Below, in pieces: positions 1 through 34,683 of a stretch of 64,000 nt of DNA. The notes below the pieces were generated by a model. The model was not told the origin of the DNA and did not search any database. It was given only the letters and a program-made list of their open reading frames with translations. The DNA is taken from IMG/VR virus record IMGVR_UViG_3300044797_000098, positions 186,001 through 250,000 of that record; one strand, 5' to 3'. Numbering within the stretch: the stretch's first letter is position 1; each line of letters opens with the position of its first letter. The position numbers were made by a program, and so were the translations under genes.

Positions 1-692
1 TTTTTACCACGTATAGAATTAGAATTATTACTAATTATTTCTGGCTCTTCTTGTTGTCCAGTAACTATATCATTAGATTGTTGCATTGTTTCTTTTTTAA
101 TAGATTCAATAATTGGTTGTTTAGCAGTTTCTTTCTTGATTTCACCAGGTGGTTTATATTGAGCATATATTTGCTTGTGCAATAATTTCTCATCTCTATT
201 GAGAATAATACCTTTTAATTCATTTTCACTTAATTTATTTATATCGTCTTTATTTATTCTATAACGAAGATACAACATTTCATTTAAATAATCCATTTGA
301 GGTTGAAAAAAATCCATATCCTTTTGCTCAACACGAAGCGTTCTATCTAATGCAGAACTTAATATTCTACAATAACTTGTATGCCAGTCTGGATCTCCGA
401 GAAAATCTTCTTTGATGGAATCAACTGCTGTTTTTAATTTGAAAAAAGTTTTTATTTGTTCACCAGCATCTTTTGTGATGAACGGTGTGCTTCGCTGATA
501 GTATTGTAGATTTTGACGAGGATTATAGTCCGTTTCTTGATTTATTCTACGCGTATCGAATGCAACTTTTGTTAATGGTTGCGATAGATTTTTTAGAGAA
601 TTAACTCGTAATTCCTGTCCATCAACACGATCTTCAATCGAAGAATGCACCTGTTTTACATTATTTAGAATTAACTTAAATATGTTGTTCAT
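1..692 (-). CDS. Hypothetical protein, 3' end runs off the window (MNNIFKLILNNVKQVHSS...)
   Basis: Open frame read by hand from ATG at 692 to the window edge; not in the ORF track; AATA-N6-CATA motif at 701-714 upstream; contains TKVAFD. Confidence 0.75.
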   Translation of the reverse strand, partial: MNNIFKLILNNVKQVHSSIEDRVDGQELRVNSLKNLSQPLTKVAFDTRRINQETDYNPRQNLQYYQRSTPFITKDAGEQIKTFFKLKTAVDSIKEDFLGDPDWHTSYCRILSSALDRTLRVEQKDMDFFQPQMDYLNEMLYLRYRINKDDINKLSENELKGIILNRDEKLLHKQIYAQYKPPGEIKKETAKQPIIESIKKETMQQSNDIVTGQQEEPEIISNNSNSIRGK

Positions 693-722
693 TATATGTA
701 TATGTGAGATTATTGGCGGTGG

Positions 723-1778
723 TTAGAATTTTAGTGATGAAGTTTTAGGTAAATTAGATTTACGATACCCTTGTGTTCCCGCCTGTGTTTTTTCGTCTAT
801 AATACGCATCTTTTCACTGAAACGAAGATATGCATCATATTTACGTTGGAGATATATTGTGGCACCTGAATATACCCAATGTAAAAATAACCATTGATTT
901 CGATTACCGGAATAATATAGTTCGTAGGTATTTTTGTCATTTGACTTATCTACTTTGTATATGCTACAATCTATATTAGCAATTGTTTTCATACCCTCTA
1001 AAAATTGAAGCGTTGATACTATTTTACAACCAGATACCATCTCTGTTTCTCTATTTATTGTACCGTCGCCATCAAAATACCCACGAATAAAATGACGATG
1101 TAAATTTTCTGGCATCCATTTAGGATATTCCAATATGAATGTTTTGCGTGATACACACCCCAATTTTTGCATTTGTTGACATATATGCTTACTGTTTATA
1201 CTTAATGTTGCCTCTATTCCTTTCCCTTCGTGCTCTCTATTCGATAGTCTTACTTGTGATTTTGCATCATTTTCGTCTTTATAGATAAGTTTGGAAAACA
1301 CGTGAAGTATTTCTTCATCTATGACATCTAATGATATTACTGTTGACCAATGGTGTGCCATCTGATTACAGCCGTCAGCATATAGGAAGCCAAGAAAATA
1401 CGCCTTCTCTTCAGTATCTATATTGTCGAAAAAATCCTCGTTGATTGGATATTTTCGGTGTGCTTCTTCGGCACTACGTGTTGGAACGTTATACTCTTCC
1501 ATATACATTAGAACGGCAGCAGCACTCAATCCATCTGGCTTACCAGCAGCTTCCAATGAAAGCCCTGTTTTATATCTTTCAATACACCTTTCTTTCATTT
1601 CCTTTGATGTGATTTTACGTGGTCGAATTGGAACGTTATGCTTCTTCAACATTTGAAGAATCGAATTGTCGCTAACCTGATGAATTTTAGCGAGTTTTGT
1701 CGTTGACCATTCTAATGTAGAATATTCGTGAATGATTTGGTTTTCTTTACCTGCCAGCTTGCCCTGATTTTTAGCCAT
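723..1778 (-). CDS. Free-standing double-motif LAGLIDADG homing endonuclease with N-terminal HTH repeats
   Basis: EKAYFLGFLYADGC and RHFIRGYFDGDG motifs; two HTH-like repeats at the N-terminus. Confidence 0.88.
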   Translation of the reverse strand: MAKNQGKLAGKENQIIHEYSTLEWSTTKLAKIHQVSDNSILQMLKKHNVPIRPRKITSKEMKERCIERYKTGLSLEAAGKPDGLSAAAVLMYMEEYNVPTRSAEEAHRKYPINEDFFDNIDTEEKAYFLGFLYADGCNQMAHHWSTVISLDVIDEEILHVFSKLIYKDENDAKSQVRLSNREHEGKGIEATLSINSKHICQQMQKLGCVSRKTFILEYPKWMPENLHRHFIRGYFDGDGTINRETEMVSGCKIVSTLQFLEGMKTIANIDCSIYKVDKSNDKNTYELYYSGNRNQWLFLHWVYSGATIYLQRKYDAYLRFSEKMRIIDEKTQAGTQGYRKSNLPKTSSLKF

Positions 1779-1800
1779 AGTGATCTCCGTTTCTCCTTAC

Positions 1801-1828
1801 AATATAGCCACTTGTGTGGGTTTGTCAA
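1801..1828 (-). promoter_or_regulatory. Sigma70-type promoter for the LAGLIDADG gene
   Basis: Minus strand TTGACA-16 nt-TATATT, followed by AAGGAG/GGAG and the ATG at 1778. Confidence 0.6.
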
Positions 1829-1871
1829 GCCCGTGTGGCAAGTAAATGACGTAATAGGCGTAGATCAACGA

Positions 1872-1911: not shown

Positions 1912-1943
1912 AAGCTAACTGCTTGATTTATTGAAGGAAACTA

Positions 1944-2960
1944 TTAGGCTCCGACGATTACTGATTTATTACCTTTTGCAACGCCACGTGGATTCACTAT
2001 GCCAATTCCAATTATTTCATTGACTACCCAGCCCAATTTCAATTGTTTTGGTTCGTCAGCAGGAAGAACTTCGATATCCTGACGAATTGGCATGACCCCA
2101 ACGAACTCGGGATCGCTGCATCCATATACGGTTCCTGCTGGAACGATCTTAGACACGAGAATGTCTGCGCCCCAGATGTGTGCGTAGAGACCGGTTTGTA
2201 GAATTTCACGTTGTGTAACGGGGTCTACTTCGCCACCGCCAACACCTTGTCCACCGCCTGAACCCCAACCGAGAATATCATTAAACTCGTTGATGTTCAT
2301 GAAGAACTTGGTTGTTACTAAGTCCCAACGATCAACTTGAACTTTGATTTCACGAAGGTCACGTTTTAGAAGACCAGCATCGCTGATATCCATTACGGTG
2401 TTTTCTTCTGAAGCAGCTGCATCAATGGCTGCGAAAACGTTGCTGTCTTCTTGTGCCATGATTTCTTGGCGAGCCTTTTGGACGGCGCGGTCAATGACGT
2501 TGAATCTGCGTCGTTTAACTTCTGCGATACGAACAGTTGGATTCGAATACACTTCGAATTCTGGAACTGTTACGCGATCACCGAATACGCGTGATTCTGG
2601 GCCGGTTCCGTTTGAAGAGATTACTACTGCTGCAACATCGATATCGCGATCGTATGTTGGGAGAGCGCCTTGTGGAAGAGGATCAACCACTAGTGCACGA
2701 CGTGCAATTCCATGATAGTCCAAGTTCCTACGAATTGGATTTGCCATTGCTTGTGCAAGAGCTAGTTTACCTTCATTAGTTAAAATGGCCCTGGAAATAA
2801 GCTCATCTCGTTTATTGTCTGATACTGATGGTGAGGTTAGTCCTGTATTGGTTGGATAACCTGATTCCATGGTTTGCGCAAATTTTGCAATTAGTGCGAA
2901 TGCGTCTTTTACGTTAGAGGCGTTAATTTCGCCTTTTGAGTCGAACATTGAATTTGACAT
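1944..2960 (-). CDS. Major capsid protein (HK97 fold)
   Basis: 338 aa; LAQAMANPIRRNLDY, IARRALVVDPLPQGA, GLYAHIWGADILVSKIVPAGTVY, GWVVNEIIGIGIVNPRGV are typical of large-phage MCPs; downstream of protease/scaffold; flanked by terminators. Confidence 0.9.
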   Translation of the reverse strand: MSNSMFDSKGEINASNVKDAFALIAKFAQTMESGYPTNTGLTSPSVSDNKRDELISRAILTNEGKLALAQAMANPIRRNLDYHGIARRALVVDPLPQGALPTYDRDIDVAAVVISSNGTGPESRVFGDRVTVPEFEVYSNPTVRIAEVKRRRFNVIDRAVQKARQEIMAQEDSNVFAAIDAAASEENTVMDISDAGLLKRDLREIKVQVDRWDLVTTKFFMNINEFNDILGWGSGGGQGVGGGEVDPVTQREILQTGLYAHIWGADILVSKIVPAGTVYGCSDPEFVGVMPIRQDIEVLPADEPKQLKLGWVVNEIIGIGIVNPRGVAKGNKSVIVGA

Positions 2961-3961: not shown

Positions 3962-5278
3962 TTATGTTAGACTTGCTAAAAATCTTTTTTCTTCTTCACT
4001 TGGCTCATGCCCAAGCTCTTTAGCAATATTAGACCAATCTACATTATCACTTGGTGTATTCTGATTAGATACCGGTTTAACTTGTGTTCCTTGCTGAGAT
4101 TGCGCTACTTCATTTGCTGTTGATTTAACATCACCATGAAGTGTTTTTTCGAACTTATCAATAGCAGACAATAATGAAACCAGTGATTGTTGTATATCTT
4201 CAACATCCGTATTCATCATATTATATAATGGATCTAATACTTTACTGTGGCTATCTGCCTCATTGAAAATACCAAGTTTTACATCTTGATTAAATTTTTG
4301 TGCATATTCTTTTACTGTATTATTGGCTTCAACTAATGATGCTGCTATCTTTTTTGATCTATCAGCATCTTCTACGTTGCTTGGATTAGTTTGTAATGAT
4401 GTTATTAACTCATTATATTGTTCAGAAAAATATGCTGTTGATTTTAATATTTGATTAAATGTTGTTAGAAACGTTCTTTCTTTATTATCTGCTGGCAGTT
4501 TATTTATTAGATCATTCATTTGATCCATTGCGTCTTTTGCGTTAGCAGATATACTAACTACGTGCGGTGCTGTTTTAGCAAGTGATGCTATTAATGCTGT
4601 TGCTCCACCACCAAGAAAACCACCTGCTTTCATACCAGCCCAAGCACCGGGTAGACCACCGAATAGCCCTCCTAAAATACCACCAATAGCAGAACCAATA
4701 AGCGCGTTTTCGCCAGCGCCTGTTCCAACGCCCAGCCACTCTTTACCTTTTTCTACGAGGTCATCATACCACTCTTTAGCGTTTTTTTTTAATGCTAATT
4801 TTTCTATGCACGCGTCTGCAAGCACACGTATATCTTCATTACCTGCATTATCCATATCATTTGCAACACGAACTAATTGCATTAGCAATTCTTTTTCAGC
4901 ATACCGATGCATTGACGTAATACTATCATTTTGTTTCAGCGCAATATCACACATAATATTATTGCGTTCAATATTATTTTCTACGAGAGCATTTAATCTA
5001 TCGTATGCTGGCGCAATAACAACTGGGGTTTTGTGCGCTGCTTCCATAATATTATTTTCATAATCAATGGAATTATCTGGTTTAACGCCATATAATGCCT
5101 GTATGACTTCGATAGTGTCTGAACCCATTCTTGGATATGGGCTCTTCTTATATCGTTTCATTTTTGCAGATTCTTTTGGTTTATCTGGCTGAGTTTTTAC
5201 CTCTTCTTCTGAAAGAGAGATCAGCCCCTTTTCTTCTGCAATTTTAGCATAGTCATTAAAAATATCACTATTTCGCAT
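3962..5278 (-). CDS. Putative internal head/ejection protein with glycine-zipper hydrophobic segment
   Basis: 438 aa; GSAIGGILGGLFGGLPGAWAGMKAGGFLGGG glycine zipper; carries the ANDMDNAG motif. Confidence 0.55.
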   Translation of the reverse strand: MRNSDIFNDYAKIAEEKGLISLSEEEVKTQPDKPKESAKMKRYKKSPYPRMGSDTIEVIQALYGVKPDNSIDYENNIMEAAHKTPVVIAPAYDRLNALVENNIERNNIMCDIALKQNDSITSMHRYAEKELLMQLVRVANDMDNAGNEDIRVLADACIEKLALKKNAKEWYDDLVEKGKEWLGVGTGAGENALIGSAIGGILGGLFGGLPGAWAGMKAGGFLGGGATALIASLAKTAPHVVSISANAKDAMDQMNDLINKLPADNKERTFLTTFNQILKSTAYFSEQYNELITSLQTNPSNVEDADRSKKIAASLVEANNTVKEYAQKFNQDVKLGIFNEADSHSKVLDPLYNMMNTDVEDIQQSLVSLLSAIDKFEKTLHGDVKSTANEVAQSQQGTQVKPVSNQNTPSDNVDWSNIAKELGHEPSEEEKRFLASLT

Positions 5279-5311: not shown

Positions 5312-6361
5312 CTATATATTCATTCCTCGTGGTTTATTTTGATCTGTTGAGCTTGCCGGGATACTATGATATTGAGATGAAAATCCGCGAATAAATGGCC
5401 CAACTATCGCAGAAACTATATCAATTTTTCTTTGATATGGTCTTGGAACGGATATCATATTTAATCCGCCAGCAAGTTTATTTCTGTCTTTAAATTTTTG
5501 AACCATTGAATCAAAACCAGATGAGTTTTTCAACTGAGATTCATATTGTTCTAATTGAGGATATGCTGAAAAAACCCATTCTAATAAAATAGAATCTACA
5601 TTCTCTATTTCACCATGTTCAATCCATATTGATGACATATTATTTCTATGAAGTGAAAAAAGATCCTGCGGGGCATCTGGTGATATTTTTATTAATTTAC
5701 CAATTCCTTGCGCTTGCTCTGTTGATTCTTCTGATTTTTTTGAGTCTTTATCTGAAAGAACTTTACCTAATTCTGAAAGACCAATCATACCAAGAACTGT
5801 TACTATTAGCCATCCAACAATTTTAATTAAAACTCCTGCTAATTTGCTTTTCATATCAGCAGTTTTAATTAAATTTTTATTATTAACTGTATTTAATGAT
5901 TGTAAAATACCTTGTTGATTCATTTCATTTAATTTTTCTTTATCAACATCTCCTGAAAAACTTGACGATACTGCATTTGAAACCATTTCACTTACTTTTG
6001 AGTGTGTTGTATTGGCGTCTGCTGGTTTTCTTGAAGATATTATTTCCTTTACAAAATCAGTAATACTTGCGCCAAGAGAGCTCCAAAAGGCTTTCCAATC
6101 AAAACCAAGAGCACCAGCGAGCGTATATAAAATTGCAAGTTTTTTGGATTTTAGACTCCATAAAAGACTATTGGTAAAAAGGGAAGCTATACTGGATATC
6201 GGACGATTTTTATCAAAAACCGAAGATATATAAGATTTTAATCCACTAAGAATTGTAGAACCGATAGAATTATCCTGAGCAATAGCTATTTTCATATAAT
6301 CTTCTCTTAGAAAAGATTCTACAAAAATTGTATCAGCTATGTATTGCAATTCTGGACGCAT
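5312..6361 (-). CDS. Hypothetical virion-region protein with predicted transmembrane segment
   Basis: 349 aa; hydrophobic LAGVLIKIVGWLIVTVLGMIGL. Confidence 0.6.
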   Translation of the reverse strand: MRPELQYIADTIFVESFLREDYMKIAIAQDNSIGSTILSGLKSYISSVFDKNRPISSIASLFTNSLLWSLKSKKLAILYTLAGALGFDWKAFWSSLGASITDFVKEIISSRKPADANTTHSKVSEMVSNAVSSSFSGDVDKEKLNEMNQQGILQSLNTVNNKNLIKTADMKSKLAGVLIKIVGWLIVTVLGMIGLSELGKVLSDKDSKKSEESTEQAQGIGKLIKISPDAPQDLFSLHRNNMSSIWIEHGEIENVDSILLEWVFSAYPQLEQYESQLKNSSGFDSMVQKFKDRNKLAGGLNMISVPRPYQRKIDIVSAIVGPFIRGFSSQYHSIPASSTDQNKPRGMNI

Positions 6362-7497
6362 TATCTTCTCGCATTATTTGTGAGGACGGTATCTATTCGT
6401 GATGTCATATGCTGAGCCCAACTAACCGTTTCTTGTGCTCTTGATGCTTGATTTGATATATTACCAACACCCCGAAACATTTCAACATATACCGGACTTG
6501 CTAATAATGTTTTTAATAAATTACCAACACCTTGAAGCAGTGGTATTAAATTATTTAACATTGCTCGGGCTTTGGTAAAATCTTTATTAGCATATGTATT
6601 CACGAATGCATCTATATCTGTATTTACATTTAATTCAAAACCACCTTCTCTTGCTTCTGGTGTTGCAACCGCGTTCCAACCATTGATAGCATTTGATATC
6701 TGTTGCACCTGAGAATATATTATACCCCATTTATTTTGTGCTATTGCTGTTTTAAAAGTAAAAGATATTTGTCTATTGAAGTCATTTATATCACCAATAC
6801 TTAATTGATTAGTATCGACATCGAATGGTAAATTAATACTGTCAGTGCCAGTATTTTGTTTTAATACTTCTTTTGTTTGATATACTGCTTTTTGTATCGC
6901 AGAACCTTGATTTTGTTGAGTTTGATCTTGTTGATCGATTTGCTGGCCTTGTTGTGCTTGTTGATTTTCTTTTGTTTCATCTGCTGGCTTTGCAGTTTCT
7001 TCTGCTATTCCGGCTTGCAATTTATTATTAGCATCAGATATTAATCCATTAACGTGTTGTATAAATAAATTATTACCGCTATCTTTTGCTTGATTTTGTA
7101 AATCTTTTAGAAAGGCAATTAATCCATCTTTCCATACATATGTTGGTGGAGCATCATTACTGAACTCTATATACGGTATTGTTTTATTTAATTGAAACTT
7201 ATCACTCATCACAATCGGATGGCCATTATAGCTAACTTTGTTATCCAACATCCACATCGTCAACTCATTTAAATTTTGTGCATTTCTTGAAAACAACTGA
7301 GCGTTATTTGGAACCTCTATTGGTGAATAGCTTGTTTTTATATTATTTAATAGTTTTAATGCAACATCTTGCATCTGTGCTGGAGAAAAAGCTTGTTGCT
7401 GTGGAGCTTGCTGTGCAACCTTAGGTTCCAACAATTTGGAAAACTCTTTTAATATTTGTTCATCATATAAAAAACTCATATTAATATCCGGGCTCAT
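6361..7497 (-). CDS. Hypothetical virion-region protein (Gln-rich linker); start possibly ATG at 7479
   Basis: 378-aa ORF abutting neighbours. Confidence 0.7.
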   Translation of the reverse strand: MSPDINMSFLYDEQILKEFSKLLEPKVAQQAPQQQAFSPAQMQDVALKLLNNIKTSYSPIEVPNNAQLFSRNAQNLNELTMWMLDNKVSYNGHPIVMSDKFQLNKTIPYIEFSNDAPPTYVWKDGLIAFLKDLQNQAKDSGNNLFIQHVNGLISDANNKLQAGIAEETAKPADETKENQQAQQGQQIDQQDQTQQNQGSAIQKAVYQTKEVLKQNTGTDSINLPFDVDTNQLSIGDINDFNRQISFTFKTAIAQNKWGIIYSQVQQISNAINGWNAVATPEAREGGFELNVNTDIDAFVNTYANKDFTKARAMLNNLIPLLQGVGNLLKTLLASPVYVEMFRGVGNISNQASRAQETVSWAQHMTSRIDTVLTNNARR

Positions 7498-8581: not shown

Positions 8582-9703
8582 TTATATGTTCCATTTTTTC
8601 TGGGCAGCATCTAAATAACTATTAAGTTGATTTAATTCATTTGTATATGCTTTAGTAATTTTTTCATCGTCTTTGTTTTCATTAGCACTAAACTCTTTAA
8701 ATACTTCATCTAATTTTCCGTTAGTCTCATTTAACCATCTTATGATTTCATTTGCATTAACTGGTTTTGTTGCCTTAGTTCGATTGATTAAGAGCTGAAC
8801 TCGTTTCATGGCTTTACTAAAACTATTTGCTAATTGAGATGATTGATTATTTTCATTTTTTTTATTAGCAAGATTAGGATCATATTGTTGTCTTGTGTTT
8901 AATGTTTTCGCATTGGTTTCAGCGGAACGTATCTGATTAACTACATCTTTGTAATCATTTGCATATCTGTATGCAATTTCGAACATTGGTAATATTTCAT
9001 TTTTCCAAGTTGTGTGCTCTTCACTATTTGAAAAAAAACCTGGTTCCTTATCACTTTTCAATCCATCCAATGCTTGATTCAGGAAGTTTTCGATATTTTG
9101 TATATTATACACATTTTTTTTATTCAATGTATTTTGAATCATATTAAAAAAATTTAAATTATGATCGGAATCTTCTCCAAGTTTTAATGCCATAGCACTA
9201 TATAACTTCATAACTTCTTTTAAATCGCCTTGTGCTTTATTATATAATACATCAGTATCTTCCTGAGACATTCCTTGACCAAGCGCAATTTTGCATTGTT
9301 TAACATATGAGGCTAATTTTCCAGTTGGTTGTTTATTTACAACATCAACAATTTTTTTATGTTTAGACACAATTGTTTCAACATCACCATTATTATCTGA
9401 TACATCGGAAACTATTTTATTATCACCGTCTGGATGAGCCTGATCTACTAAATCTTCGCCTGTTTCTTTATGTGCCTGATAGAGATGAACACCCGCTGCT
9501 TTGTAATTAACGAACTTGTTTTCTATCGATTCTGCATATTTATTATACCCTTCTGCACGAAGTTTATTGCAGAGCTTCAATAATGTTGCTGTAAGCGATG
9601 TATTTTCTGCTTGTGTAAAAATAGGTTTAGACTGTTCAGTTTCTTTATTTTGAAGATCTGCAATAGTCTCTAAATGTTTTATATCTTCTAATGTATATAC
9701 CAT
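8582..9703 (-). CDS. Putative internal head protein
   Basis: 373 aa; LCNKLRAEGYNKYA motif; DLVDQAHP...VETIVSKH resembles NIMEAAHK...VENNIERN in 3962..5278. Confidence 0.6.
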   Translation of the reverse strand: MVYTLEDIKHLETIADLQNKETEQSKPIFTQAENTSLTATLLKLCNKLRAEGYNKYAESIENKFVNYKAAGVHLYQAHKETGEDLVDQAHPDGDNKIVSDVSDNNGDVETIVSKHKKIVDVVNKQPTGKLASYVKQCKIALGQGMSQEDTDVLYNKAQGDLKEVMKLYSAMALKLGEDSDHNLNFFNMIQNTLNKKNVYNIQNIENFLNQALDGLKSDKEPGFFSNSEEHTTWKNEILPMFEIAYRYANDYKDVVNQIRSAETNAKTLNTRQQYDPNLANKKNENNQSSQLANSFSKAMKRVQLLINRTKATKPVNANEIIRWLNETNGKLDEVFKEFSANENKDDEKITKAYTNELNQLNSYLDAAQKKWNI

Positions 9704-10456: not shown

Positions 10457-10507
10457 TATATTTCCTTTCAAAAATTATATATCAACATAAAATAAAATTG
10501 TAAATAG

Positions 10508-11238: not shown

Positions 11239-11787
11239 TTATTTAGAGGATTTCTTTGAGTCTTTTTTATCTTCTTTTTTAGAATCTTTTTTGTCTTTTT
11301 TACCTTTTTGCATTTCACGCATTTTCTTCATGCGCTCTTTCATATCCATTTTTTTATCAGACTTTTTCTTATCTGATTTTTTGTCGGATTTTTTATCAGA
11401 CTTTGCTTTTGATTCAACTATTAGTTTATCAGCAATTTGAGCGCTGTAGGAAGCCAGTTTATCAAAACCAAGAGTGTCAAGATCTTCTGATGCTTGTAAT
11501 AGCATAGCAATTACATCATCTTCCGATGCTTCAGATTTTTTCTCTTCATGACAATCACATTTACATTCGTGACCTTTTTTATCACCACATTCACAACATG
11601 AGGCATTTTTTGTTAGAGCGTTTTCTAACTCAACCTCAACTTCTGTTGCTTTATCGTCTTCTGATACTTTTTTGAATGCTAATTTTTCTAGCACTGATGC
11701 GGTGGAGAATAGTTGTTTATTCTCATCGCTATTCAATACTTTGTCCATATCAGCAGCAATACTATTAGATAGATTTACGTTTTTCAT
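11239..11787 (-). CDS. Putative internal head/scaffold-associated protein with Lys-rich tail
   Basis: ASEDLDTLGFDKLA motif; CCEC...CKCDC; KKSD repeats. Confidence 0.65.
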   Translation of the reverse strand: MKNVNLSNSIAADMDKVLNSDENKQLFSTASVLEKLAFKKVSEDDKATEVEVELENALTKNASCCECGDKKGHECKCDCHEEKKSEASEDDVIAMLLQASEDLDTLGFDKLASYSAQIADKLIVESKAKSDKKSDKKSDKKKSDKKMDMKERMKKMREMQKGKKDKKDSKKEDKKDSKKSSK

Positions 11788-11807: not shown

Positions 11808-14800
11808 TTAGTATTTTCTGCCTGAGAATGCATTTGCTAATTCATCTTGGAAACCAGATGTTGCTGTTTCTGAGGAAAACATTTCTTCTGATTGAAGACC
11901 GACGACTGGCATTGCTTGTTTCTTTAGTGATTTTGGTGCATGTTTTGCGATTACTCGTTTCATGCTTTCAAAACCTTCATCATTCCATGTCATGATTTGA
12001 TCAACTTGCCCTGCAATAGCAGCTCGTTCATCTTCACATAGACCACGACGAACCATTTCATTTGCTAGTTCATATGCACGACCTAGTTTGACTTTGTAAG
12101 CAGCAACTTCTTCTTGTGCTTTTGCTTTCATGGTTTCAGTTGTTAGGAGTTTACCGAACTCTGAACCTTCTTTGCCAGCTTGGCCGTAGTATTGTCTCCA
12201 GTATTTGACAACCTCTGAATCTAGACCTTGTGCAATTAGCGCGTCTAGATTTTCAGTTTTGACTTTACCTTCTGCAATAAGTTGATTTAGACGTTCAGCT
12301 TCTTTGCGAACTTTTGGTTCTGCACGAGCTACTTCTAGATCTGCTTTTTGTTGTTCTGGTTTAGTTTCAATTAGTCCAAGGCTATCTGATGGTTTGACAT
12401 CAAGTTGTGTCTGACCGTCGGTTAGTTTGTTCGCCTCATCAAGCATATCACTATGCTTCATGGATTCAACTGATTGAATCTCACCATCTTCTTCTTTACC
12501 AGTTGCATCAGCAGCTAGTTTTGCACGATATGCGGTTCGCCCTTCTTTTGTTGTTAAATCGAATGCCATCTTGTTCTCCACTGCTTTAGCCCCAGCTGGA
12601 ACTGCTGCTCCGGCAGGAAGGTCAACCATTGTATCATTTTGATCATCAGATTTTAGATCATCGTGTTCATCTGTTGGAAGATCAAGATCTTCTAGACCGA
12701 CATCTTTATCATCATCATAATCACCTTTATCACCGGCGCCTGGCATTTCCCAAGAATCATCACCTGGTTTTGTATGATCTAGTTTATCGGCTTGTTCGAA
12801 TGTATCGCCCATGAACGCATTAGTATCATCTGCATCGGACTTATCTTCATCCTCATCTTCTTTTTCTTCCTTTTCAGCCTCTTCTTTTTCTTCTTTTTCG
12901 GCTTTTTCTTTTGCAGCCTTTTCTTCCTTGTCTTTCTTTGCTTTTTTACGAGCATCGTTCATATCATCATCTGCGAATGAAAATAATGATGCCTGTTTAG
13001 CTTCTTCAGCTCGTTTGGCAAGACCCGCAACACCGCGAACATAAGCAGCGAATGATTTTAGAACTGTTTCTGCATCACTACATGCTTTCTTTGCGTCTTC
13101 AAAAGCATCATCAACAACCGTATCAGCATAATCTTTATTTGCTTCTGACACGTTTTCAATTATGCTTGCGATTAGTTTTAGTTCATCATGATGCTCTTTT
13201 AGTTCTGCAAGTGATTTCTTTGCACCAGAAAGGAGGGCAGCGTTTAATTCTCGACGTGATTTATACATTGGAGCAAGAAGTTCACTCGCTGCTTTTGGCA
13301 TAGCTTCGAGACCTTGTTCCATATCACCCATTTGTGATTGTTCACCTGTTAGTGAACGAATTGCTTCCAATAAATCCGAAGCCTTATCTCTTACTGATTC
13401 AGCTAGTTTCATAGCTGTATCTTTTGGATCACCTTTGCCACCTTGATCTTCTGGTTTGGCATCAGCTGGAGGAGCACCCGCAACTGCTGGTGCGCCCATA
13501 TCTGGCATTGCTGGTGTTGCACCTGCACCACCAACATCGGCTGCACCTGGCTGACCACCTGGTGCTGCTACTGCTTGACCTTTTTTGTAAATTGCAGTTG
13601 CTTGTTCGAAACCAACTGTCCTGATTTTTTCTAGCATCTTTGTTCCGAACTCTTTGGTTGCAACAACATCAAAAAGAACATCACTACGACCACCAGTGAT
13701 TTCATCAACTGATGCCGTAAATACTAGTTTTTCACCATCTTCACTCTTTGCGAATACTTGCCATGCACTATTGCCAAGATCATTTGTTCCATCTGTATTG
13801 GCAGTGCGAACAAAACGGGCTTTTAGTGATGCACGTTGTAGGAGCTTTTTACGAGCAAGCTCATCCTTTTGATCGGCTGATAGAGGTGATGGATGTAGAC
13901 CTTCAACATCACCAACACCTGGGAATGGTTTTTGACCAACCATTTGCTTATCTTCTTTTTCACGAAGTTCATATTCGAGATTATCAACTGGATATTTTTG
14001 TTTACCGGGTGTTGGTTCATTTACGCCACCACCACCATTCCAATAAGCCTCTTTTGTTTTCATTACATTCTCCTTAGCCTTTTGTAGGGCAGCATTACGT
14101 CGTTCAGCACGAGCTAACATTTTTTTGCGTTCGAGTTCATCTTTTTGATCAGCTGACTCGGGGGAAGGATGTAGACCATCAACTGCGCCAACCTCAGGGA
14201 ATGGTGGTTCGCCTTTCATATGCTTATCTTCCATACGAAGTTTTTCATTCGCTGGATCAACTGGATATTTCTTTTGACCTGGGGTTGGTTCATTGACTCC
14301 ACCAGCACCTTGAAAATAAGCTTCTTTTTTGTTCATTGCATCCTTTGACATAGTATCCTCTTTGTTAGTTAGTGTATTTAATGCGTTTTCCATATTGTTA
14401 AGTCTTCCTTCCACCGAAGACATTAAATTCTTTACCTGATCTAATAATATATTATTATTAGATGCTAGCCTTTGTGGAAAATTTAATCCAAAAGATTCTT
14501 GATTAGTTTCATCTACTGGACTTGACTCAGTTCCACAAGATTGATGATCTGTTGCGGTATTTGTGTCTGGTGCTTCCGCATACATTTTTTCGAGTTCAGC
14601 TATTTCTTTTTTTAATTTATGATATTCAGCCATTAATGCATCTATCTTAGCTTTTAGTGCTGGCTTACTAACCTCTTCACCAATCATCTGATTAATTTTA
14701 TTGGATGGATTAATTTCCTCACTAATCATCTGATTTATCTTTGCACCACTATCATCTAGTGCATTATTAATTTCTTGTGCATGAGCAAGAATGGTTCTTA

Positions 14801-26033: not shown

Positions 26034-26915
26034 TTATGACGGAAAATTAGCTCCGAAGTCGAAGTTATCCGAAGTTTTGTATTCCATATGATGGTTTGCC
26101 GGATATCCACGATCTCTACGTACTTGAGCGTACCCCATGTTATCTAATAATTCCATTAATTCAGCCTGTTCTCGTTTGTCAAGGCTCCATTCATTAACTT
26201 GTGCCTCGAACATTAATTCGATGTCATGCCCACCTGATACCATTCCATTTATTAATGTTTTTGCAATTCTTGATATCAAAATTGGAACGGTAATAATGAT
26301 TCCACCAATACGATCTTGTTTAGCTTCTTTTACTAACCCGTCCTCATCAAGATCTGCTTTCTTATTTTTATATCCACCATCAATTTTTTTGATGGCTTGT
26401 TCAAGACGACTAATACCATCCAAGATTTCTCTACGGGCTTGTTCGAGTTTCCCGATATCAACTTTACCATCATAGTCATCAACTATTGCTTTTGATATTG
26501 CAGAATTAATTCGTTTAAGAGCAGATATGGTTCGTTCCATACCGGTAGTTTCTGTGCCGGTGTGTTTTGGTAGATTTTGTAGGCGATCATGAACCCATTG
26601 TAAGATGCCAGCAGGAGGAGGTGGTTTCCAAGGATCTTGAACTTCTAATTCCTCAACTTTGTTATCATCCTTATCTTTTTTGCCATCACTCTCAACTTCG
26701 ACTGGGTCTTCGGTAGACACTTCTAATGGCATATCTGCATCTGACCCTGGAAGAGGAGGGAGTTTGAACGTGATTTCCATGGCATCATTTGGCTGATGGA
26801 GTTCGACAACGTCTTCCATTGAAGGCTTTTCTTCGTATAAAACGACCTCATCTTCGTCTCCGAAGTTCTCAAAATCGTTTGCATCTAGGAACTGGGCTTG
26901 TTTATACAATGACAT
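26034..26915 (-). CDS. Putative internal head protein (acidic N-terminus)
   Basis: 293 aa; YKQAQ, NKKAD, VKEAK motifs. Confidence 0.7.
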   Translation of the reverse strand: MSLYKQAQFLDANDFENFGDEDEVVLYEEKPSMEDVVELHQPNDAMEITFKLPPLPGSDADMPLEVSTEDPVEVESDGKKDKDDNKVEELEVQDPWKPPPPAGILQWVHDRLQNLPKHTGTETTGMERTISALKRINSAISKAIVDDYDGKVDIGKLEQARREILDGISRLEQAIKKIDGGYKNKKADLDEDGLVKEAKQDRIGGIIITVPILISRIAKTLINGMVSGGHDIELMFEAQVNEWSLDKREQAELMELLDNMGYAQVRRDRGYPANHHMEYKTSDNFDFGANFPS

Positions 26916-29412: not shown

Positions 29413-31059
29413 TTATACCGCTGGTGCCGGGGCTGGTTTTGGTGCCGGTGAAACCGGTGCTGGATTTTCTACTTCTATTGGCTGAGCAGCAAGTTCACCT
29501 TGTGGATTTTCAACGGTTCCTTCTGGTTTCGTTGCTTTTTCCATATCTGTTTGATCTTGAAGTTGTTTTTTAACTTCTTTTCGTTGCTTCTCTTTTTGAT
29601 CCATTTGTTCTAAATTTGATTTAATGGCTTGTGCTCCCGGTGGAGTTTTTTGATTGTCTCCTTCGAGATCGATATTTTTTGATTTAACCGAGCCTCTTAA
29701 TTTAGATAGTATCTCATCTATACGCACGAGAGCATATTGGCCAGAATCGAGACTCTTATTGATACTTTCACCGAGTTGTGGAAAGAATTGTGCCAATCCA
29801 AGTCTTGACAACATTAAATCACATACCGCTAATTGGCGCGCAATTTCTCTCGTTCGAAAAATATTATTGACCTGTTCTAATTTATTAATAACATCTTGAA
29901 CCGTTAAATTAGCAAAAGCACTATCTAATATAGTATCAATATCAGTTTTAGGCGCTTCAACGCTTGGTGGTTTATCTACATTTTCTGGTGTTATGCCAGG
30001 CGCTTCCGGTTTAGGTTGATCAGTTTTTAAATCAGGTTTAGGATCAGGAGCATCAGGAGGTATTGCTTGTGCCTCAACAACTAAATCATTTTTACCTTCT
30101 GGAATAATTTCTTGATCCATCAGCACATCATTATCAATTTCGACTTCATTAATATCGTCAACCTGTGCTTGATCAGTTTTTTCTTCATCAGGTGTTTCAG
30201 TAATACCGGCATCCTCTAAATTATCTATGAACTTACCTACTGCACTATCCTCTGTTATGCCCTTATCTTTTACTGTTCCAGGTGGAGGAGCTTGTAAAAT
30301 ATCAGGAGTATTATTTGGTATACTACCACCGCCTTGTGGCTGACTACCACCAGCAGGAATATCTCCAAGATTTATACTCATATCACCAGGAGTTTGTTGA
30401 GCGAGTTTTACCATAAAACTACTTGCATCAGTGAATCCTTCTTTTTGTAAAATATTAGCTTGGCGAATAATTAAATCTACAACTGTTTGTAATGAAGCAG
30501 TTGATATTTTATTTACTATCTGTATTTGTTTCTTTAATTCAAAAATTGCCGAAAGCAATCTTTCAAAATCACCACCGGCGAACATATGTCCTTGCTGCGA
30601 ACTTAAAAGTTTTTCGGCTGAATTAAGTCTTCCAAGTATTTTTCTACGAAGATCTTCTATCGTTTGTCTTTTTTCTTCTTCACTTTTTTGTTTTGCAGCA
30701 GCATTGGCTGCTTCTTGTGGTGCATTTGATATTTGATCACTTACCGTGCGGAGAGGATTTGGTATATTTTGTTTTGGATTTGGGAGAAAGTAATTAGTAT
30801 CCTCATTTATATAGTATGAGGCATTCTGAGCCTTTTTATATTTTTTAAAATCTCCGGATTCATAATACTTCATCCAGTTAATAAAATCTAATTTTTCTAT
30901 TGGATTCCAGTCAGCAGTAATAGAATCTATTGCGCTATTTTTATTTATACCAAAATGCATTTTTATATATACATTTTTCATAGATTCCATCCATCTACTT
31001 AAATTATAGATAGGTTTGGTCGACATGGAATCAGACAACATAGGAAAAGCTTGCTTCAT
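29413..31059 (-). CDS. Putative internal head protein
   Basis: 548 aa; QANILQKEGFTDA motif; K-x-A-Q sites preceding Pro-rich acidic linkers. Confidence 0.65.
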   Translation of the reverse strand: MKQAFPMLSDSMSTKPIYNLSRWMESMKNVYIKMHFGINKNSAIDSITADWNPIEKLDFINWMKYYESGDFKKYKKAQNASYYINEDTNYFLPNPKQNIPNPLRTVSDQISNAPQEAANAAAKQKSEEEKRQTIEDLRRKILGRLNSAEKLLSSQQGHMFAGGDFERLLSAIFELKKQIQIVNKISTASLQTVVDLIIRQANILQKEGFTDASSFMVKLAQQTPGDMSINLGDIPAGGSQPQGGGSIPNNTPDILQAPPPGTVKDKGITEDSAVGKFIDNLEDAGITETPDEEKTDQAQVDDINEVEIDNDVLMDQEIIPEGKNDLVVEAQAIPPDAPDPKPDLKTDQPKPEAPGITPENVDKPPSVEAPKTDIDTILDSAFANLTVQDVINKLEQVNNIFRTREIARQLAVCDLMLSRLGLAQFFPQLGESINKSLDSGQYALVRIDEILSKLRGSVKSKNIDLEGDNQKTPPGAQAIKSNLEQMDQKEKQRKEVKKQLQDQTDMEKATKPEGTVENPQGELAAQPIEVENPAPVSPAPKPAPAPAV

Positions 31060-31855: not shown

Positions 31856-32566
31856 TTATTCTTGACCCAATCTTTGGCTTCTTGTATCAAACACTGTATG
31901 CGCATTTTCGTGTTGCATTATTTTTGTTTGCTCACTGACATCACCACCGGGAACTTTATTCCCATCTAATGTTGAAAAACCCGTTTCAAAATCATATACT
32001 TTATGATCCATGCAACATTGCCATCTGTGTTCACCTACACGAGCTAATTGTGCTCCAGCATGATCTGGACATGTTCTGGCACTTAATGGTGCCTCTAATA
32101 TACGATATTTTTTATAATTAGGACTTTTTTCGATATCTTTTATCGAGTCACTAACTTTATTCATTTCGTCTTGTTTTACTTTTGGATCCTTATACTTTTT
32201 TTTTAATTGCTCAATTCTATCATCTTCCATTTGTTTAGCAGCTGCAACTGCATTTTTTGGTGCAGCGAATGTCAATAAGATTTCATCAAGCACGCTTGCT
32301 TGTTTCATTAGTAATTCATCACCGCTTTCATCAAAAGCAGCAGCAACGGCAGCTAATTCATCAAGTTTTTCTGATGTTATTACCGGTTCTTCTGGTTCAA
32401 TTTTACTAACTTCTTCTGCACCTTCTCGTATCATCTCTGATGCTTTTACCAATGAACTTGCAACGATATTTAGACAATCTTCGTCGCCTTCGGCATTAAC
32501 CAAAAGATCATTTTCTGAACTTTCGAGCCAACTTGCAACTAGTAATAGTTTCTCTGATAGTTTCAT
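31856..32566 (-). CDS. Putative internal head protein with C-terminal zinc ribbon
   Basis: AAAFDESGDELLMKQA motif; CPDH...CCMDH. Confidence 0.65.
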   Translation of the reverse strand: MKLSEKLLLVASWLESSENDLLVNAEGDEDCLNIVASSLVKASEMIREGAEEVSKIEPEEPVITSEKLDELAAVAAAFDESGDELLMKQASVLDEILLTFAAPKNAVAAAKQMEDDRIEQLKKKYKDPKVKQDEMNKVSDSIKDIEKSPNYKKYRILEAPLSARTCPDHAGAQLARVGEHRWQCCMDHKVYDFETGFSTLDGNKVPGGDVSEQTKIMQHENAHTVFDTRSQRLGQE

Positions 32567-32575
32567 TTGTTTCCT

Positions 32576-34198
32576 CTAAAAAAATATCTTCGAGTTTTGT
32601 AAATATGCACCTTCATATGTGTCATCCATTCCGCGACGATAGTTAGGATGGCAATCTCCGTTCTTATCCTGATACACTTTATGTAACGGAAGCCCGGTAT
32701 GACCACATAATTCGTGTTTGCTGGAAGCGTTTTTCACTACCATCTTACAAGTGGTTGGTGTTGCAATTTTATTTGCACCGAGCCCGTTAGTATATTCTGC
32801 GAAAGCTGTTTGATATGCTTTATCATCACCTGATTCAGACAAAACATTTAGCGCATCTTCTGCTTTATCGAGATTTTCCTCTGCTACTGCTTGGCGAACA
32901 AGCTGAACAAGCTCACTTGCTTTCAAACCATATAATGGTGAAGCGACTGCTGCTGTCCTATAATCCTTGGCTTCTTTATTATTTAAAGAATTAATTCCAT
33001 CTTTGGAAAAAGACTCAATCATTCCTGATGCAATCATAATATCTGGATCAATAATTTTACCATTTTCAACACTAACTGGAACACGGAAAGCTAATCTGCC
33101 ATTATTTATTGATACCGCATATGTTATTGACTTATTATCACTATTAAATACTGATACTTGATGATTTTTTAACCCAAAACTATTTAATTTATTAATAATA
33201 GCATTTCTACCAGCATTTACTTTATCTTTACCAATTGAAAAGTTCGCAACACCAACCGCTGAATCGAAAGATTTAGCGAATGATTCCATTTCTTTATCTT
33301 GATATTTTGGAGTATTTACAACTAAGTTCTTATCTTCTGCTTCAACATTTTGGAAAAATACGCCACCAGCAAAATAATCTGATTTTGTATCTTTTTCTGA
33401 ATTTAATTTTATTAGTGCCATATCGACATTACTAATTTTTTCGATACCATTTTCCTTAATATTTTTCATCGCTTGAAGCACTAATTTATCTGAAACTGTT
33501 AATTTTTTGCCAGCATTGACTGTTATATATGATTCTAAATTAGATTTGGAAAAATCTTCTGGCCCAGCATTTCCTACGAAAACTGACGGTAATAATGCTT
33601 TTCCTGCGACTATTTCTATTGGAATAAATACCGATGTCATTCCTTTTGGAGTTTCAAAAGATGCTTGACAAGTTATGAAACTATTATCACCATTAACAAC
33701 ACTAATATTTGATGCTAATTTTATATTCGCACACGCGCGCGCGCATGCATTTTGAGCAATTTTTGCCGAGGATTCCGTATTACCACGCACTGGATTACCA
33801 AAAATACTATCTAATGCATTGGCTAATGTTGGATCAACAACTTTCTCAAAAGCTTCTTTGACTAATGAAAGATTTTCTATATTATCTCTATTATATGTTT
33901 TTGGTGCAGCAAGTTTTTCTATTTGGCCCAATTCTTGGGAAAATATTTCTGCGAACTTTGTATTTCTTGAATATAATCTTTTATATAAATCTTTTATTTC
34001 CGCTCTTGTTATGAATAATTTATTACTACCAGTCATTCTTGATACTACGTTGGCCATCACTCCAATTGTCTGATCTTCTGGATATGCTTCGGAAGCTTGC
34101 GAAAGTTTTTCTGCAAAAGATGATATAAGCACTTTTTCATTATCATCTATTGATTTTGATAGCGAGGAAGCAATATTTTTAATTTGATTAAAATCCAT
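32576..34198 (-). CDS. Hypothetical structural protein with two repeated alpha/beta domains
   Basis: VFIPIEIVAGKALLPSVFV....EDFSKSNL versus FRVPVSVENGKIIDPDIMI....ESFSKDGI. Confidence 0.7.
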   Translation of the reverse strand: MDFNQIKNIASSLSKSIDDNEKVLISSFAEKLSQASEAYPEDQTIGVMANVVSRMTGSNKLFITRAEIKDLYKRLYSRNTKFAEIFSQELGQIEKLAAPKTYNRDNIENLSLVKEAFEKVVDPTLANALDSIFGNPVRGNTESSAKIAQNACARACANIKLASNISVVNGDNSFITCQASFETPKGMTSVFIPIEIVAGKALLPSVFVGNAGPEDFSKSNLESYITVNAGKKLTVSDKLVLQAMKNIKENGIEKISNVDMALIKLNSEKDTKSDYFAGGVFFQNVEAEDKNLVVNTPKYQDKEMESFAKSFDSAVGVANFSIGKDKVNAGRNAIINKLNSFGLKNHQVSVFNSDNKSITYAVSINNGRLAFRVPVSVENGKIIDPDIMIASGMIESFSKDGINSLNNKEAKDYRTAAVASPLYGLKASELVQLVRQAVAEENLDKAEDALNVLSESGDDKAYQTAFAEYTNGLGANKIATPTTCKMVVKNASSKHELCGHTGLPLHKVYQDKNGDCHPNYRRGMDDTYEGAYLQNSKIFF

Positions 34199-34209
34199 TT
34201 GTTTGCCTG

Positions 34210-34683
34210 TTATTGAAGTATCTCTGGGTGTGTTGCAAGAATGTTTTGTTCTTCGCTTTTATTCAATGTCGACAAAAGAGCTTTTATAAAAGTTTTATCC
34301 GTTGCTAATTTTTGTGGAAGAAAACGCTTGACTGTTGAAAGATCTTCTAATGATAGCCCAAGATCTGATGCTGCAAACTTGGCAAAAGGAGTGCCACAAT
34401 AATAGATATTTACATATCCTGATTGTGATATCAATACATCCCAAGTTTTGTCGTCTGATGCTTTTTTTGTATCGATAGACGGTTCCTCGTTATATTTTGC
34501 AACTATATAAGATCCATCATCTGCGCTTTGTATTTGCCACAACTCATCGATATCATTACTATCTTTAAATCTAACTATATCGAATGCAACTTTTTCTAAC
34601 CTGTGCTTTACCTCATCTAAACGGTAAGTTTTAGTGCTAACGGTTTTATGAAGACTATTATAATCAATAGAAAAATTAGCCAT
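34210..34683 (-). CDS. Hypothetical protein, first gene of the head cluster
   Basis: 157-aa ORF; EKVAFD, KKASD. Confidence 0.7.
   Translation of the reverse strand: MANFSIDYNSLHKTVSTKTYRLDEVKHRLEKVAFDIVRFKDSNDIDELWQIQSADDGSYIVAKYNEEPSIDTKKASDDKTWDVLISQSGYVNIYYCGTPFAKFAASDLGLSLEDLSTVKRFLPQKLATDKTFIKALLSTLNKSEEQNILATHPEILQ

Follow-up and report, generated by a model that had tools for sequence, protein, structure and literature searches.

The assemblin-fold prohead serine proteases form a class that includes the herpesvirus assemblins, T4 gp21 and HK97 gp4. In herpesviruses, the protease sits at the N-terminus of the pUL26 protease-scaffold polyprotein, which is cut after Ala at the release (R) and maturation (M) sites, as illustrated by the YLQA-T and VQA-S sites of PrV (PMC4498786). 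The R site lies directly after the protease domain, and the M site lies near the C-terminus, where cutting detaches a capsid-binding tail. In contrast, the prohead proteases T4 gp21, phiKZ gp175 and SPN3US gp245 cut after Glu. The motif is L/I-x-E in T4. In SPN3US it is A-X-E, and in these phages one short motif recurs in the major capsid protein (MCP), the portal, the protease and many internal head proteins, whose propeptides are removed (PMC10052503). Protease and scaffold functions can also be found on one polypeptide or in nested genes, as in P2 gpO and lambda C-Nu3. Here we describe a short Lys-x-Ala signal that is conserved at the N-termini and linker borders of the capsid, portal, protease and internal head proteins of a 406-kb giant phage and its many uncultivated relatives. 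This signal is most likely the cutting site of the phage's head-maturation protease, as inferred from sequence comparison and a predicted fold, and such a specificity has not been described for phages.

The window analyzed here is a stretch of 64,000 nucleotides (positions 186,001 to 250,000 of IMG/VR record IMGVR_UViG_3300044797_000098), and all coordinates given below refer to this window. The initial annotation had claimed that K-x-A recurs near the N-termini or before low-complexity linkers in almost every head-cluster protein encoded in 1-34683, and had inferred from this that the phage's protease cuts after K-x-A and matures a large set of head proteins. The observation itself is confirmed, as all the examples that we checked are present in the sequence at the genes indicated. 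By composition-matched within-protein shuffles, the 34 proteins of 1-34683 (10,822 aa) contain 99 K-x-A sites against 72.1 +/- 7.7 expected (z 3.5, p about 0.0005), while the proteins of 34684-64000, which include the replication genes, show no enrichment (51 against 49.2, z 0.3). Nevertheless, this raw enrichment is only 1.38x and ranks third of 295 a-x-b residue pairs, PxP and AxA scoring as high, so that, taken alone, it is suggestive rather than decisive. K..A at spacings 0, 2 and 3 is not enriched. Genome-wide the ratio is 1.05, and the 180-240 kb bins that hold the head cluster are the highest among the full 20-kb bins, at 1.28-1.38. The position of the sites is more telling, since 13 of 32 head-cluster proteins have K-x-A in their first 40 residues (17 sites against 6.9 expected), compared with 59 of 475 proteins elsewhere in the genome (64 sites against 63.3; Fisher p = 1.3e-4).

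Comparison with relatives makes the observation stronger. In orthologue alignments from 14 related megaphage records and about 90 loci, an unbiased test over 28 orthologue families has revealed that conserved K-x-A is the most over-represented of all conserved residue pairs at spacings 0-3 (26 against 8.6 expected, z 6.2). Conserved A-Q (z 5.0) and K-x-x-Q (z 4.1) are also enriched, which gives K-x-A-Q. Control families from 34.7-64 kb show nothing (4 against 5.4), whereas the head region examined with the same 8 relatives gives 18 against 7.2. Without the polyprotein, the count is 19 against 6.0. Thus, both comparisons that had been proposed beforehand, that with the replication genes and that with homologues, came out positive. 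Among evolutionarily conserved i,i+2 pairs, K-x-A pairs have gappier flanks (median 0.26 against 0.05, p 6e-5) and less conserved flanks (p 1e-6), and 13 of 26 lie in the first 90 columns, against 277 of 1406 for other pairs (p 6e-4). The enrichment is replicated in 8 diverged relatives (head 1.32x, control 1.05x), in 133 polyprotein representatives (2732 against 1751, with P1' enriched for Y, Q and S) and in gp8-gp27 of the cultured Bacillus phage G (33 against 18.2, z 3.8). On the other hand, only about a quarter of the 99 sites (roughly 23 in the window, in 15 of 28 testable families) are conserved, so that "almost every head-cluster protein" overstates the case. TerL, the putative decoration protein, the SLT lysozyme, the phosphatase-like protein and the CCA-adding enzyme carry no conserved site. 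Of the examples initially listed, MCP K26, portal K68, K3 and K145 of the 402-aa protein (gene at 19601), K196 of the 293-aa protein (26034), K75 of the 548-aa protein (29413), K26 of the 232-aa protein (17488), K73 of the 157-aa protein (34210), and K399 and K1201 of the polyprotein are strongly conserved, while 26034 K5 and K185, 17488 K72, 34210 K31 and polyprotein K984 are poorly conserved.

The gene initially called the protease-scaffold (11808..15521, minus strand, as are all the features described below) encodes a 1237-aa protease-scaffold-like polyprotein that holds the protease domain, a coiled-coil region, two tandem modules, an Ala/Gly/Pro-rich and acidic low-complexity region, and a conserved C-terminal region. 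It matches phrog_18299, head maturation protease, at aa 103-213 (E 5e-15), and is homologous by tblastn to phage G gp19 (E 5e-29) and to the phiRSL1 protease, ORF132. More than 200 clusters of homologues, mostly of 1100-1600 aa, were found. As initially proposed, its N-terminal region of about 245 aa carries a prohead-protease domain (aa about 40-246, 14784..15404) with the predicted assemblin/T4 gp21 fold. The AF2 model, with pLDDT 85, has the characteristic beta-barrel protease fold and aligns structurally (VIA-align) over 113-132 residues to VZV protease (Z 10.4) and T4 gp21 (Z 10.2), and the same families top the Foldseek list. His132 (15126..15128, codon checked) and Ser183 (14973..14975, in V-S-M-G) are invariant in 50 homologues and are the putative catalytic residues, a role that is inferred. 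Their 51-residue spacing resembles that of other prohead proteases. The gene lies between those of the portal (20862..22736, 624 aa; phrog_16240, E 1.7e-52) and the MCP (1944..2960, 338 aa; phrog_2522, E 2.5e-77, 54% identical to phage G gp27), in the minus-strand order TerL, portal, protease fusion, MCP, with other genes between portal and fusion and between fusion and MCP, and this arrangement is syntenic in relatives.

In the MCP, the predicted propeptide cleavage site is K26-F-A28, followed by Q29 (2877..2885), with K in 106 and R in 8 of 114 homologues, and A in 114 of 114. Phage G gp27 lacks the first ~44 aa and starts 16 residues after the predicted cut, so the N-terminal segment is dispensable for the shell. 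In the portal, K68-N-A70, followed by Q (22527..22535), belongs to a conserved K-x-A-Q island in a variable, gapped S/T-rich N-terminal region ahead of the portal domain. The 402-aa protein contains K3-I-A5, followed by Q (MDKIAQ, 20795..20803), with M-x-K-x-A-Q in 12 of 13 orthologues, and K145-Q-A147, followed by G (20369..20377), whose K and A are invariant between variable and gapped flanks. In the 232-aa protein, K26-T-A28 (18103..18111) shows K in 100% and A in 78% of orthologues, with variable upstream sequence, and K139-A-A141 (17764..17772) is conserved after a gap-rich linker. The 438-aa protein (3962) carries K12-I-A14 (5237..5245; K 87% and A 94% in 47 non-redundant orthologues) and K165-N-A167 (4778..4786), a conserved K-x-A inside an indel-rich linker. 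In the 349-aa protein (5312), the window copy of K24-I-A-I-A28, followed by Q (6278..6292), is shifted by two residues with respect to the K-x-A-Q that the family of 32 non-redundant orthologues (19-60% identity) keeps at this point. In the 378-aa protein, K26-V-A28, followed by QQ (7414..7422), corresponds to K-x-A-Q-Q in close and distant orthologues, although its conservation is 0.44 in the wider set. K55-Y-A57 and K68-A-A70 of the 373-aa protein (9494..9541) are conserved at 0.75 and 1.0 in 29 non-redundant orthologues, and K35-L-A37 of the 182-aa protein (11677..11685) is conserved in 0.67 of 6 orthologues, a small family.

Within the polyprotein, K34-F-A36 (15414..15422) lies ahead of the protease domain, where F-[KR]-K-x-A is conserved. 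The two tandem ~91-aa modules (aa 396-580, 13782..14336) each open with K-E-A-Y-[FW]-x-G-x-G-G-V-N-E-P-T-P-G, the K-E-A triplets being at 14319-14327 and 14046-14054, and K.[AG][YFW][YFW].G occurs once or twice in 94 of 133 homologues. K836-R-A838 (13008..13016), ahead of a gapped acidic linker, is conserved at 0.88, and K1001-L-A1003 (12513..12521), with a variable or gapped downstream region, at 0.94. K1073-E-A1075 (12297..12305) is also conserved at 0.94 but in a well-conserved helical context, so a cleavage role is less certain. K1201-Q-A1203 (11913..11921) lies 34 aa before the C-terminus, [KR]-K-x-A being conserved there at 0.88 between variable flanks and followed by a conserved MPxVG tail.

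Additional sites map toward the other end of the cluster. K196-E-A198 of the 293-aa protein (26322..26330) is an invariant K-E-A directly after a hypervariable K-rich linker with large indels and ahead of a conserved C-terminal domain. In the 548-aa protein, K75-K-A77, followed by Q (30829..30837), corresponds to an invariant Y-K-x-A followed by a gapped region, while at K2-Q-A4 (MKQAFP, 31048..31056) most orthologues show K-x-A-Y-P-N and, in these ORF calls, continue upstream of the window protein's first Met, one orthologue carrying about 70 extra residues. K88-Q-A90 of the 236-aa protein (gene at 31856; 32297..32305) is conserved at 0.73 but in a conserved helical context, and is a weaker candidate. 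Finally, K81-F-A83 of the 540-aa protein (33950..33958) and K73-K-A75 of the 157-aa protein (34459..34467), the latter inside a gapped acidic linker, are both conserved at 0.90.

The explanation that we consider most likely, with reasonable though not full confidence, is that K-x-A, often hydrophobic-V-K-x-A followed by Q, S, A, E or Y, is a short linear motif recognised by the prohead protease of this megaphage clade, which would be the N-terminal domain of the 1237-aa protein. In this view, the protease would cut after the Ala (P3 = Lys, P1 = Ala) inside the assembled prohead, removing short N-terminal propeptides from the MCP (mature start near Q29), the portal (near Q71) and a set of internal or ejection-type head proteins. 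It would also cut linkers between domains, and would dismantle its own polyprotein into the protease, two repeated ~91-aa modules, a scaffold-like region and a 34-aa C-terminal tail. The interpretation initially proposed is supported. The analysis establishes that the motif exists, that it is specific to the head cluster, that it is conserved as islands at N-termini and linker borders, and that a protease of the right predicted fold is encoded among these genes; by contrast, that head proteins are processed at the motif, that the scissile bond follows Ala, that this protease is the enzyme responsible, and that the rest of the polyprotein acts as a scaffold are all inferences, no experimental terminus existing for any protein. 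The putative substrate set (MCP, portal, the protease itself, internal proteins) matches what prohead proteases cut in T4, phiKZ and SPN3US (PMC10052503). Against this view, several conserved sites lie in well-conserved helical contexts and may be structural (MCP K65, portal K303, polyprotein K1073 and K88 of the 236-aa protein), and more distant MCP and protease relatives (Motura, PaBG, Lu11, Yoloswag and phiRSL1) do not keep the motif. Docking of the MCP peptide on the protease gave no answer.

Among the alternatives, the one that survives best, although unlikely, is that K-x-A is a capsid-targeting or scaffold/protease-docking motif that recruits proteins into the prohead core, the scissile bond lying elsewhere or being absent. 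Many sites sit in predicted amphipathic N-terminal helices with hydrophobic residues at P5/P4, T4 internal proteins use N-terminal targeting sequences, and the motif at residues 3-5 of the 402-aa protein would release only a pentapeptide. Nevertheless, many conserved sites are internal, at indel-rich linkers (K196 of the 293-aa, K165 of the 438-aa, K145 of the 402-aa and K73 of the 157-aa protein, and the polyprotein module borders), which fits cutting better than targeting, and the two roles are not exclusive. Less likely still, the protease might have a T4/phiKZ-like Glu-P1 specificity and cut the MCP after I/V-L-E32, K-x-A being a nearby conserved structural feature. The predicted fold matches T4 gp21 as well as assemblins, and the conserved I/V-L-E at aa 30-32 of the MCP, just downstream of K-x-A, resembles the T4 L/I-x-E motif, E32 being E in 99 of 114 homologues, so that it remains an alternative candidate cut site. 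However, conserved A/S/G/L/I/V-x-E pairs are not enriched in the head families (z -0.4 to 1.3, against 6.2 for K-x-A), E32 is replaced by Q, N, D or S in 15 of 114 MCPs whereas A28 is invariant, and no Glu is conserved next to the portal, 349-aa or 402-aa protein sites. A compositional or secondary-structure artefact, in which Lys- and Ala-rich helical head proteins would give K-x-A by chance and conserve it for helix packing, is the least likely possibility. In its favour, head-cluster proteins are richer in Ala (7.5% against 5.0%), AxA is also enriched and some sites lie in conserved helices. However, the shuffles keep each protein's composition, K..A at spacings 0, 2 and 3 is at or below expectation, conserved K-x-A pairs prefer gapped, poorly conserved surroundings, and the control families show no effect.

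A more far-reaching possibility, which we put forward only tentatively, is that a very large clade of uncultivated megaphages, together with phage G, uses an assemblin-fold prohead protease with herpesvirus-like Ala-P1 specificity, cutting after K-x-A and carried in the uncultivated megaphages on a herpes-pUL26-like protease-scaffold polyprotein. This polyprotein would be cut at six or more conserved sites into the protease, two repeated small modules, scaffold pieces and a capsid-binding tail, and the same motif would serve as the entry-and-release signal for a dozen internal or ejected head proteins. If so, this would represent a phage counterpart of the herpesvirus R/M-site maturation scheme and a third specificity class among giant-phage head proteases.

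With respect to the described systems, P2 gpO and lambda C-Nu3 share with the polyprotein the association of protease and scaffold functions, but they belong to different protease families, are much smaller, and are not known to contain repeated modules or a K-x-A motif. T4 gp21, phiKZ gp175 and SPN3US gp245 belong to the same fold class and follow the same logic of one short motif recurring across head proteins, but the motif here is K-x-A. The closest cultured relative is Bacillus phage G, whose protease is 36% identical and in which K-x-A sites lie in the portal N-terminal region and at the protease C-terminus. However, gp19 is a stand-alone 300-aa protein rather than part of a 1237-aa fusion, the phage G MCP has no N-terminal propeptide, and no published cleavage sites were found for this phage. 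As for the herpesvirus assemblins, there is no sequence-level homology, the predicted P3 is Lys rather than Val or Leu, the predicted P1' is Q, S, A, E or Y rather than mostly Ser, an invariant Cys cluster is inserted, no third catalytic residue has been identified, and there are many more predicted substrates, including MCP, portal and internal proteins. In addition, the window protein has no K-x-A within about 45 aa after the GADP motif, where an R site would be expected, its first being the poorly conserved K286, although 31 of 71 homologues (about 44%) have one 20-39 aa after GADP. On the other hand, the predicted protease fold matches that of the assemblins (Z 8-10.4), the protease domain sits at the N-terminus of a long protein whose helical, low-complexity or acidic remainder looks scaffold-like, the predicted P1 is Ala, and the conserved K1201-x-A, about 34 aa from the C-terminus, resembles the herpesvirus M-site in its position.

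The window covers bases 186001-250000 of a single virus contig of 406,470 bp, and all of its long genes lie on the minus strand. PHROG scans identify a major capsid protein (MCP) at 1944-2960, a portal at 20862-22736, TerL at 22782-24635, an SLT-type lysozyme protein at 18587-19600, and a 1237-aa protein at 11808-15521 whose residues about 103-213 match a head maturation protease. The MCP is 54% identical to gp27 of Bacillus phage G, while the protease region is 36% identical to phage G gp19 and is related to the phiRSL1 and cluster-C mycobacteriophage proteases. In contrast, a blastn search of the region against GenBank phages found no match, Pfam gave no hit for the polyprotein, the MCP or the portal, and a sequence search of the protease domain against the PDB found nothing. 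Protein searches show that the MCP and the protease fusion belong to a very large family from metagenomes, including contigs of 320-480 kb. This is therefore a member of a widespread clade of uncultivated megaphages related to phage G.

The initial annotation claimed that K-x-A recurs near N-termini or before low-complexity linkers in almost every head-cluster protein. To examine this, within-protein shuffles that keep the composition of each protein were used. Proteins of 1-34683 hold 99 K-x-A sites against 72.1 +/- 7.7 expected (z 3.5), whereas proteins of 34684-64000 hold 51 against 49.2. Among all a-x-b pairs, K-x-A ranks third of 295, and PxP and AxA score about as high, so the raw count alone is not decisive. 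On the other hand, K..A at spacings 0, 2 and 3 is at or below expectation. Genome-wide the ratio is 1.05, and the bins holding the head cluster are the highest among the full 20-kb bins. Position gives a sharper signal, as 13 of 32 head-cluster proteins have K-x-A within their first 40 residues (17 sites against 6.9 expected), compared with 59 of 475 in the rest of the genome (64 against 63.3; Fisher p = 1.3e-4). The recurrence of the motif, and its position near N-termini and linkers, is thus confirmed, although in the window conserved sites are found in 15 of 28 families rather than in almost every protein.

For the comparative test, about 90 related loci were collected from IMG/VR, and the whole head cluster was then retrieved from 14 related virus records, together with the neighboring replication region from 8 of them. 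Synteny is preserved and orthologues are 20-65% identical. A first screen for conservation islands with a strict flank cut-off found too few islands of any kind to be useful, and it was replaced by a permutation test of conserved pairs and a comparison of their flanks. Each family was aligned and reduced to sequences under 90% identical, and we asked, without reference to K-x-A, which pairs of conserved columns (at least 75% identical) occur more often than expected when conserved residues are permuted within each family. Over 28 head-cluster families, K-x-A is the top pair of all types at spacings 0-3, with 26 observed against 8.6 expected (z 6.2). It is followed by adjacent A-Q and D-I (each z 5.0), Q-x-Y (z 4.7), Y-x-x-G (z 4.5) and K-x-x-Q (10 against 3.0, z 4.1); A-Q and K-x-x-Q, taken with K-x-A, spell K-x-A-Q. 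In 27 control families from 34.7-64 kb, conserved K-x-A is 4 against 5.4, while the head region with the same 8 relatives gives 18 against 7.2 (z 4.3), and leaving out the polyprotein gives 19 against 6.0 (z 5.6). T4/phiKZ-type Glu motifs are not enriched.

Compared with the 1406 other conserved i,i+2 pairs, the 26 K-x-A pairs have gappier surroundings (median 0.26 against 0.05, p 6e-5) and less conserved flanks (p 1e-6), and they lie in the first 90 columns in 13 of 26 cases, against 277 of 1406 (p 6e-4). The alignments make this concrete. The portal keeps K-x-A-Q at aa 68-71 inside a variable Ser/Thr-rich N-terminal stretch, and the 402-aa protein starts M-x-K-x-A-Q in nearly all relatives and keeps K-x-A-G at aa 145 between indels. 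The 293-aa protein keeps K-E-A directly after a hypervariable Lys-rich linker, and the 349-aa family, at 19-60% identity, keeps little in its N-terminus other than K-x-A-Q. In the MCP family, K26 is K or R in 114 of 114 homologues and A28 is invariant, while the MCP of phage G simply lacks the first ~44 residues. The first ordered MCP residue is predicted at or shortly after residue 29. The AF2 model of the MCP from the 22-sequence alignment reached a pLDDT of only 38, so the propeptide could not be placed relative to the HK97 fold. The 548-aa protein (29413-31059, minus strand) starts exactly at M-K-Q-A-F-P, whereas in these ORF calls the orthologues continue upstream of the aligned K-x-A-Y-P-N, with about 70 extra residues in the orthologue from the related record G003; the window copy appears to have lost the putative propeptide. 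The site-weighted logo shows a hydrophobic residue at P5 (L, F, M or I, 56%), Val at P4 (22%), Lys at P3, any residue at P2, Ala at P1, and Q, A, E or S at P1'.

No conserved site is carried by TerL, the putative decoration protein, the lysozyme, the phosphatase-like protein or the CCA-adding enzyme. Two very Lys-poor proteins (3147-3854 and 9764-10471, both on the minus strand; 1.7% and 2.1% K) are among the best conserved genes of the cluster, and neither has any K-x-A. The first of them is present next to the MCP in 93 of the loci and records searched and sits in the position of gp26, the decoration protein of phage G. A weak tyrosine-phosphatase-like protein (16722-17486), an SLT transglycosylase-domain protein (18587-19600) and a tRNA nucleotidyltransferase-like protein (28486-29403), all on the minus strand, are embedded in the head cluster, and the first two could be packaged or ejected enzymes. 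In addition, an endonuclease gene (723-1778, minus strand; phrog_4645, with a weak HNH match) lies directly downstream of the MCP, and a small ORF that looks HNH-like from its sequence alone (25249-25500, minus strand) lies upstream of TerL. These may be homing endonucleases in the head module, and the first has orthologues in only some relatives. A 1172-aa DnaE/PolC-like DNA polymerase III alpha (45000-48518, minus strand) lies upstream of the head cluster.

The head genes of the relatives also vary in organization. In the complete relative G001 (428,320 bp, terminal repeats), the MCP at about 183.9 kb (plus strand) and the portal-protease module, with the portal at 227.6-229.4 kb (minus strand), lie about 43 kb apart on opposite strands, whereas the window and the other relatives checked (G002-G005) have them about 18-28 kb apart and co-oriented, which represents a rearrangement of the head module. 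Some relatives (P0135, P0147, P0150 and others among the homologues recovered in the protein searches) have about 380-aa insertions splitting the protease domain near residue 105, and the portal genes of two related records (G004:286449-289415 and G011:17143-21126) have open frames of 1005 and 1369 aa with an interrupted match. These may be inteins or other inserted elements in head genes. The polymerase gene homologous to that of the window is likewise interrupted in G004 (1631-aa open frame, match in two pieces). The portal matches in two further relatives (G006:238111-239943 and G014:14044-15900) each contain one in-frame TAA, which could be read-through, a sequencing error or two genes; phage G is reported to carry a TAA-suppressor tRNA (bioRxiv 10.1101/2024.12.16.628780).

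The enrichment is replicated in other genomes. Eight diverged relatives each show it in the head cluster (ratios 1.23-1.42; total 771 against 583), while their replication regions do not (461 against 439). In 133 full-length polyprotein representatives, at most about 50% identical to one another, K-x-A occurs 2732 times against 1751 in shuffles, with Y, Q and S enriched at P1', although these proteins are homologous and cannot be taken as fully independent. Phage G gp8-gp27 hold 33 against 18.2 (z 3.8), and gp28-gp56 hold 19 against 13.6; the phage G sites include the N-terminal region of portal gp14, with KQA at 18-20 and KMA at 55-57, and the C-terminal end of protease gp19, with KVA at 248-250 and KIA at 274-276. 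On the other hand, phiRSL1, which has a homologous protease, shows no K-x-A or R-x-A enrichment in its head genes in a small sample, and more distant MCP homologues lack K-x-A at the aligned position. The signal therefore seems confined to the phage G/megaphage branch.

An AF2 model of residues 1-275 of the 1237-aa protein (pLDDT 85), built from an alignment without phage G gp19, matches the VZV, PrV, HSV and HCMV assemblins and T4 gp21 (Z up to 10.4 and 10.2), and Foldseek gives the same families. H132 and S183 are invariant in 50 homologues, as are C193, C196 and C207, and it is inferred that His132 and Ser183 are catalytic. The Cys cluster (aa 193-209; 14895-14945, minus strand), which in the window copy also includes H209, lies between the putative catalytic Ser and the following strands and looks like a small metal-binding insertion, a feature not known from T4 gp21 or assemblins. 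A complex prediction of the protease domain (aa 40-262) with MCP aa 12-46 scored an ipSAE of 0.02, which is evidence neither way. The rest of the protein holds a coiled-coil-like stretch, two tandem ~91-aa modules (aa 396-580; 13782-14336, minus strand), Ala/Gly/Pro-rich and acidic low-complexity regions, and a conserved C-terminal part with K-x-A sites at 836, 1001, 1073 and 1201. Each module opens with K-E-A-Y-[FW]-x-G-x-G-G-V-N-E-P-T-P-G and ends in a Lys/Arg-rich helix, and homologues carry 0, 1 or 2 copies; the modules may be released as small head peptides.

The reading that best fits the head-specific, position-specific and evolutionarily conserved behavior of K-x-A, as well as the substrate set of MCP, portal, protease and internal proteins, is that K-x-A is the cleavage motif of the clade's prohead protease, probably cut after Ala. 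The interpretation put forward in the initial annotation, namely that the phage's protease cuts after K-x-A and matures a large set of head proteins, is thus supported. While the enrichment, position and conservation of the motif are established by the analysis, no actual cleavage is shown, and the cut itself, its position after Ala and the role of this protease in making it are inferred. Among the alternatives, K-x-A might be a docking or targeting motif with cleavage elsewhere, but the internal linker sites argue against this as its sole role. A T4-like cut after the conserved E32 of the MCP is less likely, since there is no family-wide Glu signal and E32 is less conserved than A28. A composition or helix artefact is argued against by the spacing specificity, the controls and the gappy context.

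Proteolytic maturation decides what a giant-phage head finally contains, and so far the only motifs known for giant phages, in T4, phiKZ and SPN3US, cut after Glu. A rule of cleavage after K-x-A would allow the prediction of mature termini, propeptides and polyprotein products for hundreds of uncultivated megaphage genomes from sequence alone, and it marks about a dozen uncharacterized proteins as likely packaged or ejected head proteins. As cultured phage G shows the same signal, the prediction is directly testable. Searches of the accessible literature found no report of a K-x-A prohead-protease motif and no cleavage sites for phage G, and the 2024 phage G preprint reports none. Both a prohead protease with a recurrent short motif and a protease-scaffold fusion are already known kinds of system, and what appears to be new is the specificity and the organization of the polyprotein.

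The substrate set of MCP, portal, protease and internal proteins matches that of T4, phiKZ and SPN3US, and in SPN3US the motif is A-X-E (PMC10052503). In addition, the layout of the 1237-aa protein, with a site at 1201 that lies 34 aa from the C-terminus, recalls herpesvirus pUL26. The resemblance is incomplete, as the window protein has no K-x-A directly after the protease domain, although 31 of 71 homologues do. In pUL26, an N-terminal assemblin is released from a C-terminal scaffold at the R-site and a C-terminal capsid-binding tail is removed at the M-site, and both cuts are after Ala, YLQA-T and VQA-S in PrV (PMC4498786). An Ala-P1 specificity would add a functional link to the structural one between phage and herpesvirus capsid proteases.
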